In this document: positions 1-28,536 of the stretch, one piece after another
Layout of the letters: every line of letters starts with the position of its first letter
How positions within the stretch are numbered: position 1 is the first letter of the stretch
Source: Fimbriosthenelais zetlandica
Lineage: Eukaryota
Reading direction: 5' to 3'
Length of the DNA stretch: 64,000 nucleotides
Assembly (NCBI GenBank): GCA_977030845.1
Contig: OZ365112.1
Location: 24,800,001 to 24,864,000, forward strand
The notes under the pieces: generated by a model
What the model was told of the DNA's origin: nothing
The model's input: only the letters and a program-made list of their open reading frames with translations
The model's database searches: none
Translations under genes and position numbers: made by a program

Positions 1-3000
1 ATGAACTCCTCTGAGATTGTCTGTCAAGCACATGGTCCTCACCTGACTCTATGTAGCCGCCATTCTGATGAATTATGTTATCAGATATTCCATTGGTGGC
101 CGAATAACTCGACCCTTCTTGGATAAGAGAGCCTGGCCGGCTTGACTTTCGGATCTCCTTTCCACTTGAGAGGCTGACAAGGCTCTCTCTTTTGGAGACA
201 GAGTCTCTTACTAGACTGCCTCCATTCACGTGGATATTTCCGTTCATCATTGTAGGTCGGTTACTTATGGCATCTATGGGTTCATCATAGGAATCGTCCA
301 TGTCCATGTGACTTTCAGACTGCTTAACAACGCTTCCCCTATCACTCAGATCATCGTACCTTCCTGCATTGTACACTACCGTCGAACCAGCCGTGCTTTC
401 AATATCTTCGCTGAAACCATGCTTCCCAATAGGAGCTTCTCTCTGAGCTCCGATATCCTCAAAGCCTGCTCTGACTGCCTTCAGGTTACTGGCTTGTACA
501 ATGTCTTTGTCTTCAGTATGACTTGAGATCACCTCACTTGCTGCATGCTCCGAATAATCATTGGCTCTATCCCTGATGGAACCGATACGACCAGTGCCAA
601 ACTCTTCAGTAGAATTAGTAAAACTAGTGTTCAGGTCAGATTTGGGTGGACTGGATGCCATCTTTAGGAAAGAATGATTGATGATAGACCCACCATACGT
701 TGGTATGACCTTCTCTCCTGTTTTCTTGGTTATTTGTTCAAAGATGGACAATCTCGCTTTGACATTGAAAGCCGAAATATCATACTCATCATCAAGGTGT
801 TCATTAGCTTGCTTGAGTTTCTCGCCATATTTGTCTTCATCAATGTTGTATTTGATTTCAGCAGATTCTCTTTCTTCTGTTTTCTTGGACCGTAGAACAT
901 TGTGAAGCTCATCAAAAAGTGTACCATCCTCACTGGATAGTTGTTCTTTGGGTTCCTCCCTCAACTGGGATGGTTTCAGGCCGCGTTTCTCTCGGATGTC
1001 TGCTAAAATGGCTTTGGATATAGACATATCCTCATCAGACTCATCCGCAGAATTTCCATTGGTTACAACAGTATGAGCTGCCAGGGCGCCTACAATATCA
1101 CCAGTTTCAGATTGTGGTTGTTCCTCGGCTGGAAGGTTGTTGGAATAACTCATCCTTGCTTCCTCAGGCGGTGGGGCTGATTCCAGGTGATCCACCTCAG
1201 TATGAGTGATGACATGATTTGTTTCTTCTGAGTGATATACAGAGTCTTCTCTGTTCCCTTCTGACTCTGCATATTCTCTCGTCTGCTCATACTGATTAGA
1301 ATGTTGTACATCATGATCATATACATTCTGCCCTTCTGTTTCTTCATGAGATCTTTCACCACCGTGACCATAGTCGTTCTGCTCTTCAATATGCTCAGAA
1401 TAACGATCAGAGTTTCTCACTTCATTATTATATTCATTCTTCTCTTCTACCTGTTCCTCATTTAGCGGTGAATACCTGTCAACTTCCTGTTGATATAACT
1501 CATTGTTATCTATGATTGCATGCTGTACGTCCTGGTCCATTTCTTGGAATGAGTGATTGTGTGTACTTGCTTCCTCAATGTCATTCCCTGTAATATTGTC
1601 ATGAACAGACTGGCGACTTTCCTCATGCGACTGGTTGAATCCAATATGCTCGGAATGAGTTGCTCCTTGGCTAATCTCATCCTGATGCCCCGACTCGTAT
1701 GATTCGTTCTCAATAAGGGCTCGGTGTTCCGTGCTGCTGTCCTTATCATACTGCGAAACTTCACCACCTTGAGCACTGGAGTCATGTGTTTGATATCCTT
1801 CGTCTTCTCTTGGAAGGCCATCTTCTATTTTCCTCACTTGAGAATCTCCGGTTGCCCCATCAAGACTCTCCCGTTCATCTTCATATAGAATGGGACTCGA
1901 CCTTGCTCTGGGGCCAGGGGACTCGGCCATGATTAGGGAATCAACATCACCAGAACCTTCAGGCTTTAACAACTGATTCTTGTATTCTGAAGTTTCGGAA
2001 ACAACAGCTACAGGAGCTGCGGAGTGGGCTTCTTGAACAAATTCTTCATTGACTCTCGTTTCTGATTCTTTATTCCATTCACCAGGGTGTTCATAGTCCT
2101 CATCTTCCAGCTCTTCTATTTTGGCATCATCATATCCAAGACTGGAATAAGACATCGCTCCAGCTGTGGCAATGACAGCAGCTCCAGCAGTTGCTGCACC
2201 TGCAGGTAGTAAAACATCTCTCGTCTTCGTTTCCTCATCTTCATTTCCTTTGCTATGGCCTTTGGATTTTCTGAAACCAAACCATGATCTTTTCTTTTCC
2301 TTTGTCTTCCTTTCTGCCTCTTCAACAAACATGGGTTCATCGTCTGATCTCACAACGTCATCGTCATACGTGATTTCCTTTTTGGAGCCTTTCTTCTGTT
2401 TCTTGACCTTTTTGCTCTTCTTTTCCTCAATATACTGTGGTTCTTCAATATACATTTGTTCTTCCTTTCGCTCTGAGTGAATAACAGACACATCTGAGGC
2501 TTCTACCACATGGGCTTCTTCCTTGACAAATTCTGTGTCTGTGGGTTCAATAATTGCCACTGAATCCTTTCCCTTTTTCTTCTTCTCTTTCATTTTGTAT
2601 TCTTTCTCAATCACTTTCTTCTCGTCTTTATTAACGACTAACGTCTCCTTCTTTTCTTTCTTTTTCTTCTTAGATTCCTTTACCACAGGAGCAGCTGCAG
2701 CCACCAGTGCCTCGTGTTCAACTATTTCATTATCAGTGTTATCCCTGACAACCTCTGTGTCTGTGGGATCCATAATTACCAGCGATTCCTTTTCCTTTTT
2801 CTTCTTCTCTTTCTTTTTGTATTCTTTCTCAATCACTTTCTTTTCATCCTTATTAAAGACTAACGTCTCCTTCTTTTCTTTTTTTTTCTTCTTAGATTCC
2901 TTTACCACAGGGGCGGCCGCAGCCACTAGTGCCTCCTGCTCAACTATTACGTTATCAGTGTCATCAATAACCTCTTCTTTCTTCTTCGATTTCTTTTCCT

Positions 3001-5582
3001 TCTTTTTGTATTCTTTTTCAACAACAAGCTTTTCATCTTTGTTTACAACAACTGTCTCCTTTTTCTCCTTCTTTTTCTTCTTTGAATCCTTCTCCTTATA
3101 TTCTTTTTCAACAAGTAGTATGCCTTCATGCTCAACAATTTCTTGTTTCTTTTTTGACTTCTTATCCTTTTTACTGAAGGTCTCCTGATCAAATTCCTCG
3201 GTCAGTTCCATTTCGTCATCAGACTTGTAACTCTTTTTCTTTTCCTTTTTGTCTTTTTTCTTCTTCTTACTTTCTGACAGGATTATAGCAGGGGCAGCGG
3301 ACTCTAATGTCTCGGCGTCTTCTGAAATGACTATTTGTTCAGCGGCATCAGTTTCATCCTTATCTGCACTCTTCCTTCCAAACAGAGAAGTTCTTGCCTT
3401 CTTCTTTTTCCTAATTTTATTTCCTGACATTGCAACTAAGGGGACACCGATTGCTGCCGCCTGAATCAATCCAGTATCATGATCATTCACCTCTTCATCG
3501 GGATCTGAAAATATTTCTTCTTTCACTTCCTCGAGGACGGGATTATTCTCTGACTGTTCTTCTGTCACATAGCTTTGCAACACAGTGTTGTCCATTTCCT
3601 CGAGGACAGGAATATTCTCTGAATGTTCTTCTGTCACATAGCTTTGCAACACAGTGTTGTCCATTTCCTCGAGGACGGGAATATTCTCTGACTGTTCTTC
3701 TGTCACATAGCTTTGCAACACAGTGTTGTCCATTTCCTCCAGGACAGGAATATTCTCTGAATGTTCTTCTGTCACATAACTTTGCAAGACAGTAGTATCA
3801 TCAGATATTGGTCTGTTTACAAAGGCTTCATCATCAGCAGTATATCTATCTCTACTAATGATAGTATCACTCTGATCAATCTCGTTTAACTCCTGCAATA
3901 ACCTCTGATCATCCTCCGGCATTGCCACCACATTGAAGTTGTCCTCTTCAATATTCTCCTGGTGATCACCCTGGTGGATCTCTATGATAGGATCTTCTCT
4001 GTTATCTCTATCTTCTAAAACAAAGCTTTCCCTTGCCATTGATCGTCTCTCACTGCCCCCATGACTGATTATTGAATTCCTATTGCTCTCTAAATGAGAC
4101 CCCCTGTAACTGCCTGTCTCTGAATTCGGCCTCATGATGTTTCTCCCGTCATCAACTTCCTCCTCAGGGTGAGCTGAATAGTGGCTTTCTTCTCTCTGGT
4201 TGTCGATAATTGAATCACGGTTGTATGCCATTTCTTCCACCACAAAGCTCTCCTGAGCCAGGGATCTCTGGTCACTGTCTTTCACTAGGTAACTACTTGG
4301 TCTTGCAACCTCATCTCTAAAAGAGGCGTTATCCATGTCAGAATGAGCCTTGCTATATTCTTGGTCCTGGTCCATGTTCAGACTCTCTCTGGCGGAGGAC
4401 AGATGCCTTGACTGTAGGAGACTTGAACTGTTACTGGCTACAACATGGTGAATGTCATGTTGACCATCGTCTCCTGACACTAAACTCATGGAGCGCCTCT
4501 CCATTTGCTGCTCTCCGTTAAACTCCTGCAAGCTGCTCCCTTCTTTGAAGGACTCCGCTTTTGATAATCTGCTTCTCACTGCTTCACTATGCAAAGAGTC
4601 TACATCATCCTTGAATGATGTCCTTTCAGCAAATGAGGATCTCTGGACTTCTGTATCATCTGCTCTGAACTCTGGTCTTTCTTCCACATGCACCATGTTC
4701 TCAGATATGGCGGTTTCTCCCACTTCTGACTCTCTGTCAATCAGTGAAGACTCCCTCCCTGTCTGTTCGAAGCCCTGCGTGTAAGACCTTCTCTCGTCGT
4801 TATAATCCTGTCCCTCATGTTCACTACCTTCGTCAATCATCCTGGGAGCTTGTGCCACTGCAGCAACTGTAGAACTTTGTACAAGTTCATGGTTGTAGTC
4901 AGATTCATATTGACCATCATTAAACACCTCACTGATCCTGTTTTCTTCTATGAGGCTAGGCTCGTGATCCACAACTTCATGGGCCTGGAATGCTTCATTA
5001 TCAAAAACTTCTCTGGGCATTTCATTCTCTGAGAAAGTATTTACATGAGGTTCCTCGCGAATAAGCTCATCATCGTAATGACTATGGGCATTTTCACTGT
5101 ACACTACATCCTCGTGGTCATCATTAGCCTCAGAAACAATAATGGTTGTTGCCCCAGCGGCTACAACCGCTGCAGTTGCTGCTGCTCCTGTGGCAACAAC
5201 AGCATCAGTACCAGAGAATCGCTGGCTGCTGCTATGAGAGTTATCGGAACTTATCTTTGAACCCCTTTTTTCTTTTCGCAGCAATTTCGATTTATCACTG
5301 ACACTGTTCACATTTGAGTTATCATATTCCTCTCTGATAGCTCGGCCATTAGCTGCTTGTTCATTTACCACATGCACTTCAGCTTCGTTTTTATGCTTGT
5401 CTCCGTCCTCTTCAGTAGCCACTTTTGGTAGGAATGTGTGGCCTTCGTAGTTTAGACTTTCAGTGTCCTCGTTCTGAGCTGGTGCAGTGCTTGTTCCAGA
5501 GATGGCTCTGTCCATGTACTTGGCATGACCAACTCCTCCCTCTCTGCCCTTCTGTTTGGACTTGCGGCCACAAGGTAAGCAT
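1..5582 (-). CDS. Giant coding exon (>=5.5 kb) of an uncharacterised single-pass membrane protein; encodes a long intrinsically disordered, E/D/S-rich and K-block cytoplasmic tail
   Basis: Acceptor ttccgtgatttcag|A at 5583/5582 (phase 2). My translation in the frame starting at 5581 (CLPCGRKSKQKGREGG...) found no stop through position 2 (...DRQSQRSS), i.e. 1860 codons; the frame is consistent at both ends. Missing from the ORF track because no stop lies in the window. A possible donor CAG|GTGAGG at 43/42 could end the exon just inside the window. Confidence 0.9.
2525..2962 (-). repeat. Two ~222-bp (74-aa) Lys-rich coding repeats, with degenerate partial copies up to ~3200
   Basis: Markers such as tagattcctttaccacagg (2671, 2893) and tctgtgtctgtggg (2532, 2754) are 222 bp apart. 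Unit approx. E(H/Q)EALVAAAAPVVKESKKKKKEKKETLV(V/F)NKDEKKVIEKEYK.KEKKKK..S..I..PTDTE.V. Confidence 0.9.
3527..3796 (-). repeat. Four 69-bp (23-aa) coding tandem repeats TVLQSYVTEE(H/Q)SENIPVLEEMDN
   Basis: ttcctc at 3527, 3596, 3665 and 3734 (period 69); copies are near-identical. Confidence 0.95.
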
Positions 5583-5872
5583 CTGAAATCACGGAATTAA
5601 TGCAATAAATATAACCTTACTAATTAGAAATACCATATTGACCTAATCCAACTTGTTCAGATATATTATTACCATGTTTAAAAATGATCATTTTGATAGT
5701 AATGCTAGTGATCCACTTAAAGAAAAGTCGGTCTGCGTCTTGCGTCTGGCGGGAGACGTGCGTCTGGGGAAACACAGAGCACACAACCGGACGTAACAGG
5801 ACGTAAGGCGGTTTTGCGTCTAAGTGGATCACTAGCATAAAATTCGTTCAATATGCCCCCCAGAAAACTTAC

Positions 5873-5954
5873 TTGTTGCAGAAGGCCCATAAAATAAGAT
5901 AAACACAGCCTCCGACCACAAGAACCCCTCCAATGGAAAAGCTGATGTAAGCAA
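5873..5954 (-). CDS. 82-nt coding exon encoding most of the transmembrane helix (AYISFSIGGVLVVGGCVYLILWAFCN)
   Basis: Acceptor tttaatttcttttcag| (phase 1) and donor CAA|GTAAGT (phase 2). Open and hydrophobic; AA+A gives Lys in frame with the giant exon. Confidence 0.88.
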
Positions 5955-6958
5955 CTGAAAAGAAATTAAAACGTAATTAATGCAAGGGAAACCAACTTAA
6001 AATTTTGAGGATTACCCACACCTAACCCCACCCACCCACCCCCTCACTACGCACGGTAAAGCTATATAGGATTTGACATCCGTATCGACACCCTTCGTCC
6101 AACTTTACAATACATGATCCAACTCTATTATTCCTGATTCATCTCTCCCCGAGCCTCCCTTTGTTAAAACCAACAAGACTGCTTTTTGATCAGTATTTAC
6201 TGTTGGAGGCAATGTGTACAAGTGTGGTTCATATTATTTAGCGCCCGGATCTGAAATGGGTCATTTCAAGCCAAGAGAGTGAGAGATCCACAAAAATGAT
6301 AACCGGTCTGTCTACTCGAGCACGTGAAGGAGAAAGAGAAAGACATTTCTGAAAAAGGGAGTCAGAAGGAGAACAGAGAGAGGAGCATGATTATTAGTCA
6401 GTTGAGTTGGGTGAGTGGGAGGAAGACAGTACTGTACTTGAGGCCACTTTCATAATTTATAGGTCTACCATTTAAGTGCCCGGAGCGGAAGACACAGAGG
6501 CACAAAACAAAATGATGACAATCAGGAACTGAATTTCACCTTTACTTAAATAACACATGTATAACTAATACAACTTTTCGTATATTGAATCTGCCAATCT
6601 TCAGTGCTATTATCCCAACCTACGCTTCCCGTGAGACATGCTCTGAAAGCATCTAAAATATAAAAGTCACCAAACATCTTTCTGGAGGTTTTTGGAAACA
6701 GAGATTGGCCCCACCCATAGAATTAAATTGAGCAATGGAGGAAAGGAACTAAACACGCTAGCTATATCAGAGGCAACGCCCATTCCAGGGAAAAGATCCA
6801 AGAAGGGATCTATAGAGTATTAACCCATTCTGATACAGAATTGCATCTCGTCCCTCCATATCCCCCACCCTCGATGCCTACGCCGAACATAGGCAATTCA
6901 TTTTCTGACATTGTATATACATTCAATAATAGATTAAGCAATAAATAAACACACATAC

Positions 6959-6995
6959 CAAGTATCATCCACGGATGCTCATCCGTAGCCCCCAT
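6959..6995 (-). CDS. Probable start-codon exon (MGATDEHPWMIL); full exon 7032-6959
   Basis: Acceptor tttttttcctctttttcag| at 7033/7032 and donor CTTG|GTATGT (phase 1; G+TT = Val, in frame with the next exon). ATG at 6995 is in strong context (AGGATGG). The frame is open to the acceptor (VVSLDIYQNNFR), so an upstream coding exon is not excluded. Confidence 0.75.
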
Positions 6996-9900
6996 CCTGA
7001 AATTATTTTGGTAAATATCCAAGGAAACAACCCTGAAAAAGAGGAAAAAAAACTTAAATACACCAAATTAATTCGTATCCAGAGCGTATGATCCAGAGAG
7101 TTTAATGGGAATAAGGGTCAAAATCAATCATAGTGAGAGGTGCATCTGATAAAGTATTTGACTATTTAAATGGCGCGTCAATTGAAAAGAATATCAATCA
7201 ACTGAAGTGAGGAAGGAACATTCTCGACTGCACCCTCTTTTGTAGGTTTTGTGTCCTCAGAGTGTATCCTAACTTCTTTAGAGTAAACTTGATTTCTTGG
7301 CAGGTACAATTTTTCAACAATTTTTTATCCGAAAAGCAGAGTTACTGCACGTGATGAGAATGTTTTTCAACGGACTTTTCCCCTTTATTTTTTTTCCTTT
7401 TATAAATTTCTAGATCCTAGGAACCGGACTTCTTGAGTTATCAGAGCAGAAAAGAAAGTATTTTTATGGAGAGAGAAAAGGGCATGCTTCTTGGCAGTGG
7501 TACATCTTACTGTCACTACATACATTACTCTGAGCAGAAGAGGCAGCTAGAAGAGTGGAACAAAAGTTAAATGTTAATATTGATTATGAAATAATATTAA
7601 TTCCAAAAGGAAATTCCAAAAGAGAAAAAAAGAAGATTAGAAGACATATTAGATCATCATTAGTAGAATTAGAATTAGAAGACAATGAAGTTGGAGAAGA
7701 ATTACATGAAAAAATCTAACCAAAATCAACTTAATATCTGCCTACTAAATTGCTCTATCACACAGTCCCCTGAATTGGAACAACCTCCGTTCTACTTGAT
7801 ATACTAAATATATATTCCCGGGTGATCCCAGGCAAAGACGAGATGGATTCATGCGGCCAAGAAATGTAAATAAGAAAATATAGTTTTTCTGCTAATGTTT
7901 GCTGCACACCACTGCTTCTTGTAAAACTAAACCACATTGCCATTCACCATGCATCCATAATTCCATACAGAATCATTTCAGAATTTACAAATTAAAGAAT
8001 AGAAATAATGCCAAAAATGAATGCCTCTCGTTCTAAAGATTGGCTAATTTACATTCCGAACCATATGTGTTTTTGCCTCAGTATAGAATTCGAAGAAAAA
8101 TTTGGCATTTGAAGATGATACCTATTCATGAATTGACATTCAGTCTATCTACTTCCGGTATACAGGTAATTAATTCAATTTACAGGGTATCACATTAAAG
8201 CTATAACTCCTGCCATATATTAAGAGTTAAATCCAGCCTATTTTTTCTTCTAATCTGTCCTTAAACTAAGCCTATTCTAAATACACAATAGGCGCCAAAT
8301 ATGTAAGTTTATATTAAGGAATTCCTCGATCTAATATTGGTACTGCCTATTTAATATCACTAGGAGATGTACATAAGTTTTGTAGACATACTTCACTTCC
8401 AAAAATGCAAAACCAAGGTATGTAAATATCTTCATCTTTCCCATCTCTACCCCTGTGCCAAAGAAGGGCCTTCCCAAAATGCCTGCCCGTTGTGTATTTG
8501 CCTTTGACTAGTTCTTTGCCATTATTTTTGTTATGTACATTCCCCCTAGCGATCGTGACATCTCCAGCACCGATGAGCATAAAAACAGGGACCGAGAAGC
8601 ACCATTGAAAATCCCCCACCGTGTAATATTGGCTGCAGTGTATGATATCTTAACCAAGGTAAATAGTCGTCTAAAATATGTTGGTTATAATCCAAAAAAA
8701 TAAAAATGTCCATTGGTGTGGTATCAATAATTATTCCTAGTCATTCTATGAAGAGATACATTTTAACTCAAAAGCAAATGCATTTAGACAGAATTGATTT
8801 TTCAACACCCATTTGATACAACCTAAGTGTTATGACATCTTTCTCACTCACAACAAGTGTATTGACAGGAATACATGCAAACACAGCACTTCCTGTGACT
8901 GTGCATATATATTTTTTGATGGTACGGGCATATAATGTCTATTCAACATCCTCCAGTAGCTTTCATGAATGAAATTCACCTTGGGAATTTGATCCACATC
9001 TTATAAGAGCCCCTCCCCTTTATACTACATTGTATGGGCGACATCCTAGCTTCCCGGATACAGTGCGCGTGAACATGGGATAAGCGCGACAAACGCTATA
9101 AATCTGCTTCAAAAAAGCTTGGATTAAGGCATTTTTGAATTGAATATCACTACATCAGTATAAGGCCCGAGTCATCGAGCATCTCTTTCTCATTATAGGC
9201 CAAAACCCTCAAATGCACTATGCCCTCCGGTGCTCTGGGGACATTGAATATTACATTGTACATATATCAGTATCAGGCATATGCTCTCAAATGCCCAGGC
9301 GCAATTACAGCCTCTCTCACAATCATATTAGGCATAGGCCTAGTATAACTCTCACGTATACAAACCAATACACTTATATATCTGTCATTTACTTGTTTAT
9401 TTATGACATAGGACTGTTAACGCCACCACCTGAACAGCTCAAAAAGACGTCAATGTGAAGATTCCATGCCAAGAAATCCTGAATAAATAGACACAGGAAA
9501 AGCCAGCTGAGGTTCAAAATCTAAAAGACATGGGCGTAAAATATAGCGTCCAGCATACAAAAACACAGAGACCTTGTAGAGTGCATGCAACCTACTCACT
9601 ATTGAAGGTCCCTATAGCTATTCATCCATTTCCCCATTAGATTCATGGGAATTGCACTCAAATATATATGGGAATCAACATCAACAGGTAAACGTGGATC
9701 ACTAAAATCTAACACGTGTGCAGTAATGGACCTTTGTGACTGATTATTGAATGCTTTAGATCTTTTCCACCAGTTTTACAGTATTTCATTCCACCGTAAA
9801 TTAAACCATTGTTGATCAGTTTCTTTCTGAATGTACAACTATCGCAACAGTGCATGCATACAGAAAGTGTCTGCTTTTGACTTAATCATCTGAAAGATGT

Positions 9901-20267: not shown

Positions 20268-20569
20268 TCAAGGTCGCGACCTCTTCTGCAACAAGAGTTG
20301 TCGTAGCGAGTTGGCTTCCTCTCTCAAAGTGGCTACTTGTGCTCGTAAGATGGCATTTTCTTTTTCTAAAAAGCTCGCCCTGATAGCGATCTCATCTTCT
20401 CTGGCTTTGCGAGCATCTCGCGACTTCTTCGCTGCTTGGTTGTTTCGTTTTCTTCGTTCGAAGTATTTGTTGTCTTTCAGGTCTTCTGGAATGGGTTTCT
20501 TTTCGCTCCGCGGACGGCGTTGCGACTGTTGTGTGAGAGCAATGGCATGAGCGACAGCGCTTGATGGAC
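20268..20569 (-). CDS. Last coding exon of a PAR-family bZIP transcription factor (CES-2 / Drosophila CG7786-like; HLF/TEF/DBP/giant-related)
   Basis: Acceptor ctttctacttcttctacttgcag|GT (phase 1). Encodes RRPRSEKKPIPEDLKDNKYFERRKRNNQAAKKSRDARKAREDEIAIRASFLEKENAILRAQVATLREEANSLRQLLLQKRSRP*: the PAR-type basic region (NNxAAKxSR, IAIRASFLEKEN) plus a leucine zipper. Stop TGA at 20270-20268. Confidence 0.95.
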
Positions 20570-20760
20570 CTGCAAGTAGAAGAAGTAGAAAGATAGTTAG
20601 CAAAGGTTGGGAGATTGTTTGATTTGACTTTTCAAAGTAAAGTGGTGTGACAGAAGCAATTAACTGTGTATAGTGGGTCCAAATATAGACAGGCCCACAG
20701 CCTGCTGTCTCCGAAGCTACCATGGGTGGAGAAGATGCGACAGGTTCAGACCAGCCTCAC

Positions 20761-27600: not shown

Positions 27601-28536
27601 ATGTCAGGAAGCAGAAGGTGATTTCTTTCATTATCAGCCCAAAAGGCATCAGCGCTGGTTTCATGCACCATTTCGGTACGTCAGAGGACTTAATCTGTCG
27701 CCAACACAGTCGCCAACCGTCGCATCCTTCTCATGCTTTACTTGCTTTTATCACCGGCGGGTGGCGACAGTGAGGTCTCCCTCTCCATCCTCGCGTTCTC
27801 TCCCTTCTCGCGTTGCCAGATGTTGCCTTGACAACCGATCGAATTACGCTACACTGCGACCCCATGACCTCAGGGTCAAAACAGCGGCGTTAGGGTTGCG
27901 ACCCCAGCCCTAGGGCTGTGTAGGGCCTTTCATGGTCCAATATGACGCTTGACCCGTACAGGGAAAGATGCTGGAATGGCCAACTCCCTTCTCAACACAG
28001 TGCTGGCCGAGACAAGGGGCGCTCCTAGTCCCAACACAAGGTCTTGGCCTCTGACCTCGGCCTCTTAATGGCAACAAAATGGCTACAATATGACGTACAA
28101 AACACACGCGCCCCGCGTAATGGATAAAGCCAGGCCGGTGAAAAACCCGACCACTTTTCACACCTAAAGGCGCGGGGGATGAAGGACGGGGGGAAGAGGG
28201 GAAGGGCACAGAGGGCCTGCCGTGCGGGGTCAGAAAGGTCGAGGCGAGGTGTGGGGTGCGATTGAAAGGGGTGAGCTCATCTTCCACGGGTCAAGTTAAA
28301 CATGTCAATTTTGATAAAAACATAACTCACCAAGCAGACAAATTACATGGACTCAAGCAAGGCGAGGCAATGATTGAGACGAGGGGTGCAGCTTTAAGTG
28401 CTTCACTCCATACAGTCTAATGGGCGACTAAAGCCAGGCAATGAAGAGGACTTTGATTGCTCTTGATGTGGGAAAAGAGTGAATGGATGCAATGTGCGAC
28501 CATTGCCTGTCATTCCAATTCAACATAATTCGCCAT

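Follow-up and report, generated by a model that had tools for sequence, protein, structure and literature searches.

A large unannotated gene of Fimbriosthenelais zetlandica predicted to encode a membrane-anchored protein with a giant disordered tail

MARCKS/GAP-43/BASP1 and AKAP12 are acidic, disordered and lipid-anchored proteins, in which basic-aromatic clusters bind the acidic inner leaflet of the membrane. p180/RRBP1 and kinectin have an N-terminal signal-anchor, a cytosolic region of Lys-rich tandem repeats and a large repeat-bearing exon. Synaptotagmin starts with a short lumenal N-terminus and a transmembrane helix, which is followed by a Cys cluster and a polybasic stretch; triadin and junctin are single-pass proteins that carry a long, charged, KEKE-type lumenal tail behind a cytosolic N-terminus. 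The giant ankyrins (ANK/ZU5/death), MAP1B/futsch (MAP1 domains) and AHNAK (PDZ) contain folded domains and have no N-terminal transmembrane anchor. The transmembrane adaptor proteins (TRAPs) are proteins of vertebrate immune cells. They are defined by a short ectodomain, a single transmembrane segment, a juxtamembrane CxxC motif and a motif-driven tail that is free of enzymatic domains (PMC3342071). AKAP motifs are about 31 amino acids long (PMC8851525). Here we describe a gene from Fimbriosthenelais zetlandica that shares single traits with each of these systems. It lies on the minus strand of a window of 64,000 nucleotides (assembly GCA_977030845.1, contig OZ365112.1, positions 24,800,001-24,864,000 of the forward strand); all gene coordinates given below count from window position 1. 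The comparisons at hand indicate that this is a real and conserved invertebrate gene that has escaped annotation, and we consider the gene model and its coding status highly probable.

Exact translation of the minus strand revealed a frame that is free of stop codons from position 5596 to base 2, which corresponds to 1865 codons; the other two minus-strand frames contain 84 and 212 stops. The probability of such an open frame occurring by chance, estimated from the base composition, is 1e-50 to 1e-55. The giant frame is missing from the listing of open reading frames (ORFs) because it runs off the start of the window. A scripted splice joined this frame to two small upstream exons and gave a stop-free product of 1900 amino acids with canonical GT/AG splice sites and with intron phases 1 and then 2. 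Coding exon 1 (6959-6995, 37 nt) begins with ATG and ends at the donor GTATGT; it codes for MGATDEHPWMIL and supplies one further base, the first of a Val codon. Intron 1 (5955-6958, 1004 nt, GT...AG, phase 1) is followed by coding exon 2 (5873-5954, 82 nt), which is bordered by the acceptor TTTCAG and the donor GTAAGT. Its product, ILVAYISFSIGGVLVVGGCVYLILWAF (residues 11-37 of the model), includes most of the predicted transmembrane helix and the first juxtamembrane Cys. Intron 2 (5583-5872, 290 nt, GTAAGT...TTTCAG, phase 2) leads to the acceptor GATTTCAG of coding exon 3 (2-5582), which covers at least 5581 nt and 1860 codons and remains open to the window edge. Judging from the alignment with the orthologue P0001 (see below), the C-terminus of the protein should be only tens of codons, roughly 20-100, past this edge.

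A search of 5.8 billion protein clusters with a word-indexed method found a single relative of the protein, P0001 (2814 amino acids, E 1.6e-78). When a profile of the C-terminal region was run with HMMER against 1.84 billion representatives, it recovered only P0001 and one further protein, P0002 (1465 amino acids, E 1.9e-21); a search with the N-terminal region returned the same two proteins. A third protein, P0003 (2834 amino acids), is a copy from the sample of P0001 and clusters with it at an identity of at least 90%. All three are unnamed ORF calls on large contigs of ENA metagenome assemblies, and these contigs are evidently host DNA. The orthologous ORFs extend over 8.5 kb (P0001, P0003) and 4.4 kb (P0002), and each is a single ORF closed by a stop codon.

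The contig of P0001, labeled L001, comes from a distant species and was compared with the window. It contains a transmembrane exon at 7893-7974, about 2 kb upstream of the 8.5-kb ORF, which is also 82 nt long and has identical splice sites and phases. This exon encodes AYISFALGGVLVVGGCIYVILWVFCN; relative to exon 2 of the window, 11 codons have changed synonymously and 5 conservatively. The introns on its two sides are not alignable to those of the window, and intron 1 of the window is without tblastx similarity to L001. In a tblastx comparison of 14 kb of the window with 10 kb of the upstream DNA of L001, the transmembrane micro-exon was the sole conserved block. The 8.5-kb ORF is preceded by a TTTCAG acceptor in the same phase, with a stop codon just upstream of it. 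For the first exon, the matching sequence in L001 is MANTGSDWMVL (2099-2132, 34 nt), which has a good Kozak context and a GTGAGT donor. The alignment of this mini-exon with exon 1 scored 23, as compared to 8.2 +/- 3.7 (maximum 19) for 200 shuffles; the match is reciprocal-best and takes first place out of 116 window candidates, the best independent alternative scoring 7. These data support the three-exon model because the length of the micro-exon, both phases, both acceptors and the coding sequence are kept while the introns have become unalignable.

It could be argued that this is not one gene, i.e. that the micro-exons with the membrane segment belong to a separate small transcript and that the large ORF is read from an internal Met or is a non-functional remnant. 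The gene calls of P0001-P0003, which are prokaryote-style, would fit this explanation, as all of them begin inside the big exon and lack the anchor. However, the conserved V-G-H-A-K-Y is already encoded before the big exon reaches its first Met, and a stop codon sits 14-23 nt upstream of the acceptor; for this reason the big exon cannot stand alone. The first of the conserved islands described below starts upstream of this Met too. Moreover, exon length, phases and acceptor are kept at saturated synonymous divergence (dS), and the coding sequence is under the constraint reported below. Hence we regard this explanation as extremely unlikely.

Positions 1-6995 of the window had been singled out by an original prediction, which proposed three minus-strand exons with canonical splice sites and phases 1 and then 2; exact translation and splicing bear this structure out. 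The spliced product begins with exactly the 52 residues given there, the 1860 stop-free codons were recovered, and the stop codons which that prediction had named as grounds for its own rejection were absent. The joining of the exons is supported by L001, in which exon length, phases and both acceptors are kept. The tiny membrane anchor likewise held up: there is one strongly hydrophobic helix, and its exon is kept in L001. The prediction of a tail with no further Cys is also correct, as the big exon encodes no Cys apart from the pair in CLPCG.

Some additional features were noted around the small exons. A TTTCAG acceptor-like site is located at 6996-7001 on the minus strand, 1 nt upstream of the ATG of exon 1, and a TATTTAAG box lies at 7040-7060 on the same strand, about 55 nt upstream of this ATG. 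L001 has an acceptor-like CCTTTCAG 33 nt before the orthologous ATG. An upstream non-coding exon before exon 1 is possible. Intron 2 holds a perfect inverted repeat of 18 nt (5702-5719 and 5821-5838; ATGCTAGTGATCCACTTA and TAAGTGGATCACTAGCAT) with arms 101 nt apart, which looks like a small insertion of the miniature inverted-repeat transposable element (MITE) type.

Between the window and L001 the synonymous sites are saturated, and the proportion of non-synonymous differences (pN) is about 0.29 in the conserved islands versus about 0.5 elsewhere. A closer pair is provided by L001 and a contig labeled L002. They are collinear, have about 96% identical non-coding DNA and come from one ENA metagenome assembly with a coverage of 38x and 36x. 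With 4% divergence in the non-coding DNA, L001 and L002 are haplotypes or sister taxa; probably they are two separately assembled haplotypes of a very heterozygous host animal. The ratio of non-synonymous to synonymous changes (dN/dS) in this pair is 0.17 over 2809 codons and ranges from 0.14 to 0.26 in every segment. The module close to the C-terminus differs by 8 synonymous and 0 non-synonymous changes; the transmembrane exon has a single synonymous change, and in exon 1 the two contigs do not differ. The low dN/dS in every segment implies that the whole tail is translated and constrained, at least in the lineage of L001 and L002. These substitution patterns indicate that purifying selection acts across the entire tail.

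The protein has an acidic N-terminus of 10 residues and then a hydrophobic helix of 27 residues with a Kyte-Doolittle value of 2.26 and a summed Hessa free energy of -0.6 kcal/mol. Directly behind this helix follow a Cys cluster and a polybasic patch (C-N-K-C-L-P-C-G-R-K-S-K-Q-K-G-R; 5543-5582 plus 5873-5880, minus strand). The sequence in the same place of L001 is C-N-K-C-C-S-K-K-S-K-K-K, so that the window has the Cys pattern C-x2-C-x2-C and L001 the pattern C-x2-C-C. This is a classic context for palmitoylation, and the Cys cluster is probably S-palmitoylated. In both sequences the N-side flank of the helix has a charge of -2 and the C-side flank one of +6. The positive C-flank predicts, by the positive-inside rule, a type III (N-out, C-in) anchor with the tail in the cytosol.

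No Cys occurs in the tail, in which Glu, Ser, Lys and Asp are abundant. With 415 acidic and 243 basic residues, 35% of it is charged and its net charge is -172. A strongly acidic chain with KEKE-like blocks could also be imagined on the other side of the membrane, as a high-capacity Ca2+-binding or matrix protein like triadin/junctin or the acidic secreted matrix proteins; the N-terminal segment would then serve as a type II anchor or as a cleaved signal peptide, and the hydrophobic segment does end in a small-x-small triplet (A-F-C). This orientation is very unlikely, since the positive-inside rule points in the opposite direction in both species, where the N-terminal flank is acidic and the C-terminal flank has a charge of +6. 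Furthermore, the hydrophobic core of 27 residues is too long for a signal peptide, and Cys residues clustered right next to the helix are typical of palmitoylation in the cytosol. The tail shows neither Cys nor a mucin-like bias toward Ser/Thr/Pro, its numerous poly-Lys/Arg runs would expose it to convertases in the secretory path, and Pfam gave no match of the triadin/junctin type. The charge flanks thus favor the predicted cytosolic tail.

A three-way alignment of the window with P0001 and P0002 showed that conservation in the tail is concentrated in about ten short islands, which make up 12% of the tail and hold 54% of the invariant residues. The tail evolves fast; by tandem duplication its length among the relatives has come to vary from 1465 to 2834 residues. 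Island 1 (5426-5530, minus strand as for all features of the tail; residues 58-92 of the model) is a juxtamembrane island of 35 residues (GHAKYMD...YEGHTFLP; GHAKYMD...SGTSTAPAQ...ESLNYEGHTFLP) with 26 residues invariant across the three species. Smaller conserved motifs occur within 3866-4264, namely SLAQESFVVEEMAYNRDSIIDNQ (4196-4264) and DDQRLLQELNEIDQSD (3866-3913), and a hydrophobic-plus-polybasic motif, AAAIGVPLVAMSGNKIRKKKKARTSLFGRKS (3368-3460), is present in all three species. Two more islands lie within 1775-1942: DSLIMAESPGPRARSSPILYEDE (1874-1942) and EDEGYQTHDSS (1775-1807). The island consensus sequences include DSL..A.SP.P.ARSSP..YE and DEGYQT. The most conserved part is a C-terminal module of about 115 amino acids (713-1024; residues 1560-1663 of the model) with identities of 58% and 43%, as compared to about 30-36% overall. 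The motif DDSYDEPIDAI (266-298) near the C-terminus has the consensus DDSYDEP.DAI, is common only to the window and P0001 and falls below the threshold for a three-way island. A capping-protein-interaction motif, FFAT, a helix binding the RII subunit of protein kinase A (PKA) and 14-3-3 mode-1 sites were considered by eye for the islands and dropped for lack of fit.

The tail also contains hydrophobic stretches. Stretch 1 (5135-5203; residues 167-189 of the model) is rich in Ala, Gly, Val and Thr, has a Kyte-Doolittle value of 1.71 and a Hessa free energy of +2.3, which is marginal for membrane insertion, and has a counterpart in P0001 and P0002. The Ala/Gly-rich stretch 2 (2153-2215) follows a basic-aromatic patch, KKRSWFGFRKSK (2261-2296). 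In the relatives this arrangement recurs as a unit: the patch with the consensus KK[RK]SWFGF[RG]K[ST]K, an acidic linker and then a stretch of about 20 residues rich in Ala, Gly and Val. This WFGF unit is present in 1 copy in the window, 1 in P0002 and 7 in P0001, where five of the seven are spaced by about 191 residues and are about 99% identical.

With lengths of 19-25 residues, Kyte-Doolittle values of 1.6-1.9 and a conserved position relative to the basic-aromatic patch, these stretches could in principle be additional transmembrane helices of the glycine-zipper type, and the protein would then be polytopic with giant charged loops. Their Hessa values of +2 to +4 kcal/mol are marginal for insertion, compared with -0.6 for the N-terminal helix, and AlphaFold2 did not model stretch 2 as a helix. 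The number of stretches varies from about 2-3 in the window and P0002 to 8 in P0001; this variation makes it unlikely that they are true transmembrane helices, as it would flip the side of the C-terminal module between species. We therefore consider a polytopic protein very improbable and retain the single N-terminal anchor.

The center of the tail is a Lys/Glu-rich, KEKE-like region (2252-3304) with 27-33% Lys plus Arg and about 25% Asp plus Glu. It includes a tandem repeat of 222 bp x 2 (2520-2965), and in each unit a poly-Lys/Glu block comes after a short patch of Ala/Val/Pro. Another in-frame tandem array (3527-3793) is recent, with 3.9 copies of a 69-bp unit that are 94% identical and encode the 23-residue unit NTVLQSYVTEE.SEN.PVLEE... 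The occurrence of such arrays in the window (69 bp x 3.9; 222 bp x 2) and in P0001 implies that the length of the tail is free to vary.

The combination of an N-terminal anchor, Lys-rich repeats and Ala/Val/Pro patches in one giant exon recalls proteins that tether organelles to the cytoskeleton or to ribosomes, and the repeats might contact microtubules or ribosomes in the way of the KKEE repeats of MAP1B or the basic repeats of the ER proteins p180/RRBP1 and kinectin. But these families were not matched in Pfam, there is no prediction of a long coiled coil, and within the tail the Lys-rich repeats show the lowest conservation and the greatest variation in copy number. A tether of this kind is quite unlikely.

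As a separate observation, L001 (12578-15478) and L002 (12644-15538) each contain, in the giant exon of the orthologue, about five tandem copies of a 573-bp (191-residue) unit with about 99% identical protein sequence. L001 and L002 differ in length by 20 residues across this array, and the array is therefore evolving quickly.

Nine of the 55 Tyr residues of the tail are invariant, compared with 11% of all residues. They include those in NYEGH, LYEDE and GYQT. These tyrosines, together with the short ectodomain, the single transmembrane segment, the juxtamembrane CxxC and the enzyme-free tail, are compatible with a strict TRAP comparable to LAT or PAG, a transmembrane adaptor that is phosphorylated on tyrosine and in which the conserved Tyr residues would be docking sites for SH2 domains. 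On the other hand, the invariant residues show no clear enrichment of Tyr, none of the invariant Tyr is in a canonical YxN, YxxM or YxxV context, the tail is 5-10 times longer than that of any TRAP, and no TRAP family was matched in Pfam. A strict TRAP is consequently unlikely, and the wider reading as a scaffold or spacer is to be preferred.

Four helices are predicted in the C-terminal module: SISKAILADIREKR, TLFDELHNVLRSKK, KLKQANEHLDDEY and FNVKARLSIFEQITKK. AlphaFold2 modeled this module with a predicted local distance difference test (pLDDT) score of 45 and four isolated helices (13-29, 46-62, 78-95 and 103-117). The region with the KEKE and WFGF sequences gave a pLDDT of 48.5, with three helices of about 20 residues (pLDDT up to 88) and coil elsewhere. 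The models are too low in confidence for fold searches. Low pLDDT and short helices together favor disorder with helical binding motifs over a globular domain. From its composition, the AlphaFold2 models and the lack of a Pfam or PDB match, the tail appears to be intrinsically disordered.

Searches for a described family were negative. Pfam at E <= 1 on the tail, P0001 and P0002 gave no match, and the full set of Pfam queries (the tail, P0001, P0002, the C-terminal module, the WH2-like and WFGF peptides and the transmembrane exon) returned only sub-threshold noise. There was no match in a PDB sequence search, and the best scores in the ESM Atlas, 0.67-0.75 for HBT1 and Aim21 clusters, are at noise level. 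JGI metagenome scans with profiles of the C-terminal module and the N-terminal region gave no match, and no short proteins (55-175 amino acids) were found that could be fragments of spliced transcripts. A hint at an actin regulator from the Atlas matches to Aim21, WH2 and DUF4592 was dropped, since no test supported it. By these searches the family appears very narrow, consisting of P0001, its near-identical copy P0003, and P0002 as the three related proteins, and it fits no described family.

The original prediction of a disordered tail without a folded domain agrees with the AlphaFold2 models, which are mostly coil, and with the Pfam and PDB results. It had recognised no family, and neither Pfam, PDB, the ESM Atlas nor HMMER pointed to a characterised one. 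Its proposal of a lineage-specific, membrane-tethered scaffold is supported. The narrow family and the anchor are in line with it; the term scaffold is still an interpretation, and the tail is not featureless but contains about ten islands, basic-aromatic patches and Ala/Gly-rich hydrophobic stretches.

On balance, we think it rather likely that the gene encodes a giant, cytosolic, membrane-tethered scaffold or spacer of an undescribed, lineage-restricted family. The product would be a single-pass type III protein of at least 1900 residues, which pins a disordered, net-acidic chain to the cytosolic face of a membrane. Its Cys cluster would be S-palmitoylated, while the positive flank would keep the tail cytosolic. 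The juxtamembrane island and the C-terminal cluster of four helices may recruit partners. A more detailed scheme is tentative and, to our mind, possible rather than probable: motifs that recur along the tail and pair a small hydrophobic patch with a polybasic or aromatic cluster (KKRSWFGFRKSK, KIRKKKKARTSLFGRK, AAAPVV-KESKKKKKEKKE) would attach it reversibly to the acidic inner leaflet, and the acidic loops would project away from the membrane. These contacts with acidic lipids would be multivalent and probably sensitive to phosphorylation, in the manner of the effector domain of MARCKS. Similarly speculative is the extended version, a family of palmitoylated giant type III proteins with the tail pinned at many points of the inner leaflet, as a transmembrane, multivalent counterpart of the lipid-organising scaffolds of the MARCKS/AKAP12 type; the four-helix cluster would recruit cytoskeletal or signalling partners and the length would be tuned by tandem duplication.

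Several points weigh against these proposals. All statements on palmitoylation, topology, localisation and lipid binding are predictions. The splicing is supported by cross-species comparison, and the C-terminus lies beyond the window. Given their Kyte-Doolittle values, the Ala/Gly-rich stretches need not be peripheral patches. The likeness to MARCKS, AKAP12 and WH2 was noted by eye, and Pfam at E <= 10 gave no match on isolated peptides. For the MARCKS/AKAP12 motif this holds for five isolated WFGF peptides, and Pfam did not detect the motif in the tail either. For the WH2-like first helix of the C-terminal module, A-I-L-A-D-I-R-E-K-R-G-L-K, it holds for isolated peptides from three species; a WH2 cluster ranked only 74th in the Atlas with a score of 0.56. 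Finally, the searched databases may under-represent annotated invertebrate proteomes, and 'lineage-restricted' is for this reason a lower bound on the range of the family.

In the surroundings of the gene, an ORF of 151 amino acids at 20268-20723 on the minus strand of the window ends in a bZIP domain (Pfam bZIP_2, E 1.7e-16; Atlas 0.94). Its basic region looks by eye like the PAR/NFIL3/giant type; this ORF probably represents the final exon of a neighbouring transcription-factor gene, about 13 kb upstream of the gene described here. On L001, an ORF with a caspase-type Peptidase_C14 match is located at 28021-28416 (minus strand), about 10 kb downstream of the orthologue. An Rfam scan of the whole window gave no match.

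The locus is an example of a large gene under selection that was missed by standard annotation, with the sole membrane anchor carried by exons of 37 and 82 nt. The immediate impact is modest because this is an orphan gene in a non-model animal. If the proposed mechanism is right, the protein could serve as a natural model for studying the workings of a disordered chain of about 2000 residues that is tethered to a membrane, in which a few short motifs are strongly constrained while the length varies two-fold between species.

Compared with the known systems, the anchor resembles the N-terminal anchor of synaptotagmin; no C2 domains are found up to the stop codon in the full-length orthologous ORFs. 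As in the giant-exon scaffolds, of which the original prediction had named the giant ankyrins and MAP1B/futsch, a long, repeat-prone disordered region is encoded by one exon that exceeds 5 kb; there is no homology to them. It resembles p180/RRBP1 and kinectin in its N-terminal anchor, its Lys-rich repeat region and its large exon, but it differs from them in having a Cys cluster and no decapeptide repeat, long coiled coil or Pfam match. Unlike in triadin and junctin, the charge flanks predict that the tail is cytosolic. The motif KKRSWFGFRKSK is reminiscent of the W-x-x-F-basic-basic motifs of MARCKS/AKAP12; unlike these proteins, the protein described here would be anchored by a transmembrane helix and not by myristate alone. 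In layout the protein parallels the TRAPs (LAT, NTAL, PAG/Cbp, LIME), with a short N-terminus, one transmembrane helix, a CxxC-type Cys motif and a long enzyme-free tail. The juxtamembrane CxxC, a predicted palmitoylation site, is present in both the window and L001. There is no sequence homology to the LAT, PAG or NTAL families, as judged by the Pfam searches at E <= 1, and the tail has at least 1850 residues instead of 200-400 and is polyampholytic with Lys/Glu repeats and hydrophobic-polybasic patches. In summary, a known type of architecture, the disordered adaptor anchored in a membrane, is seen here on an unusual scale.

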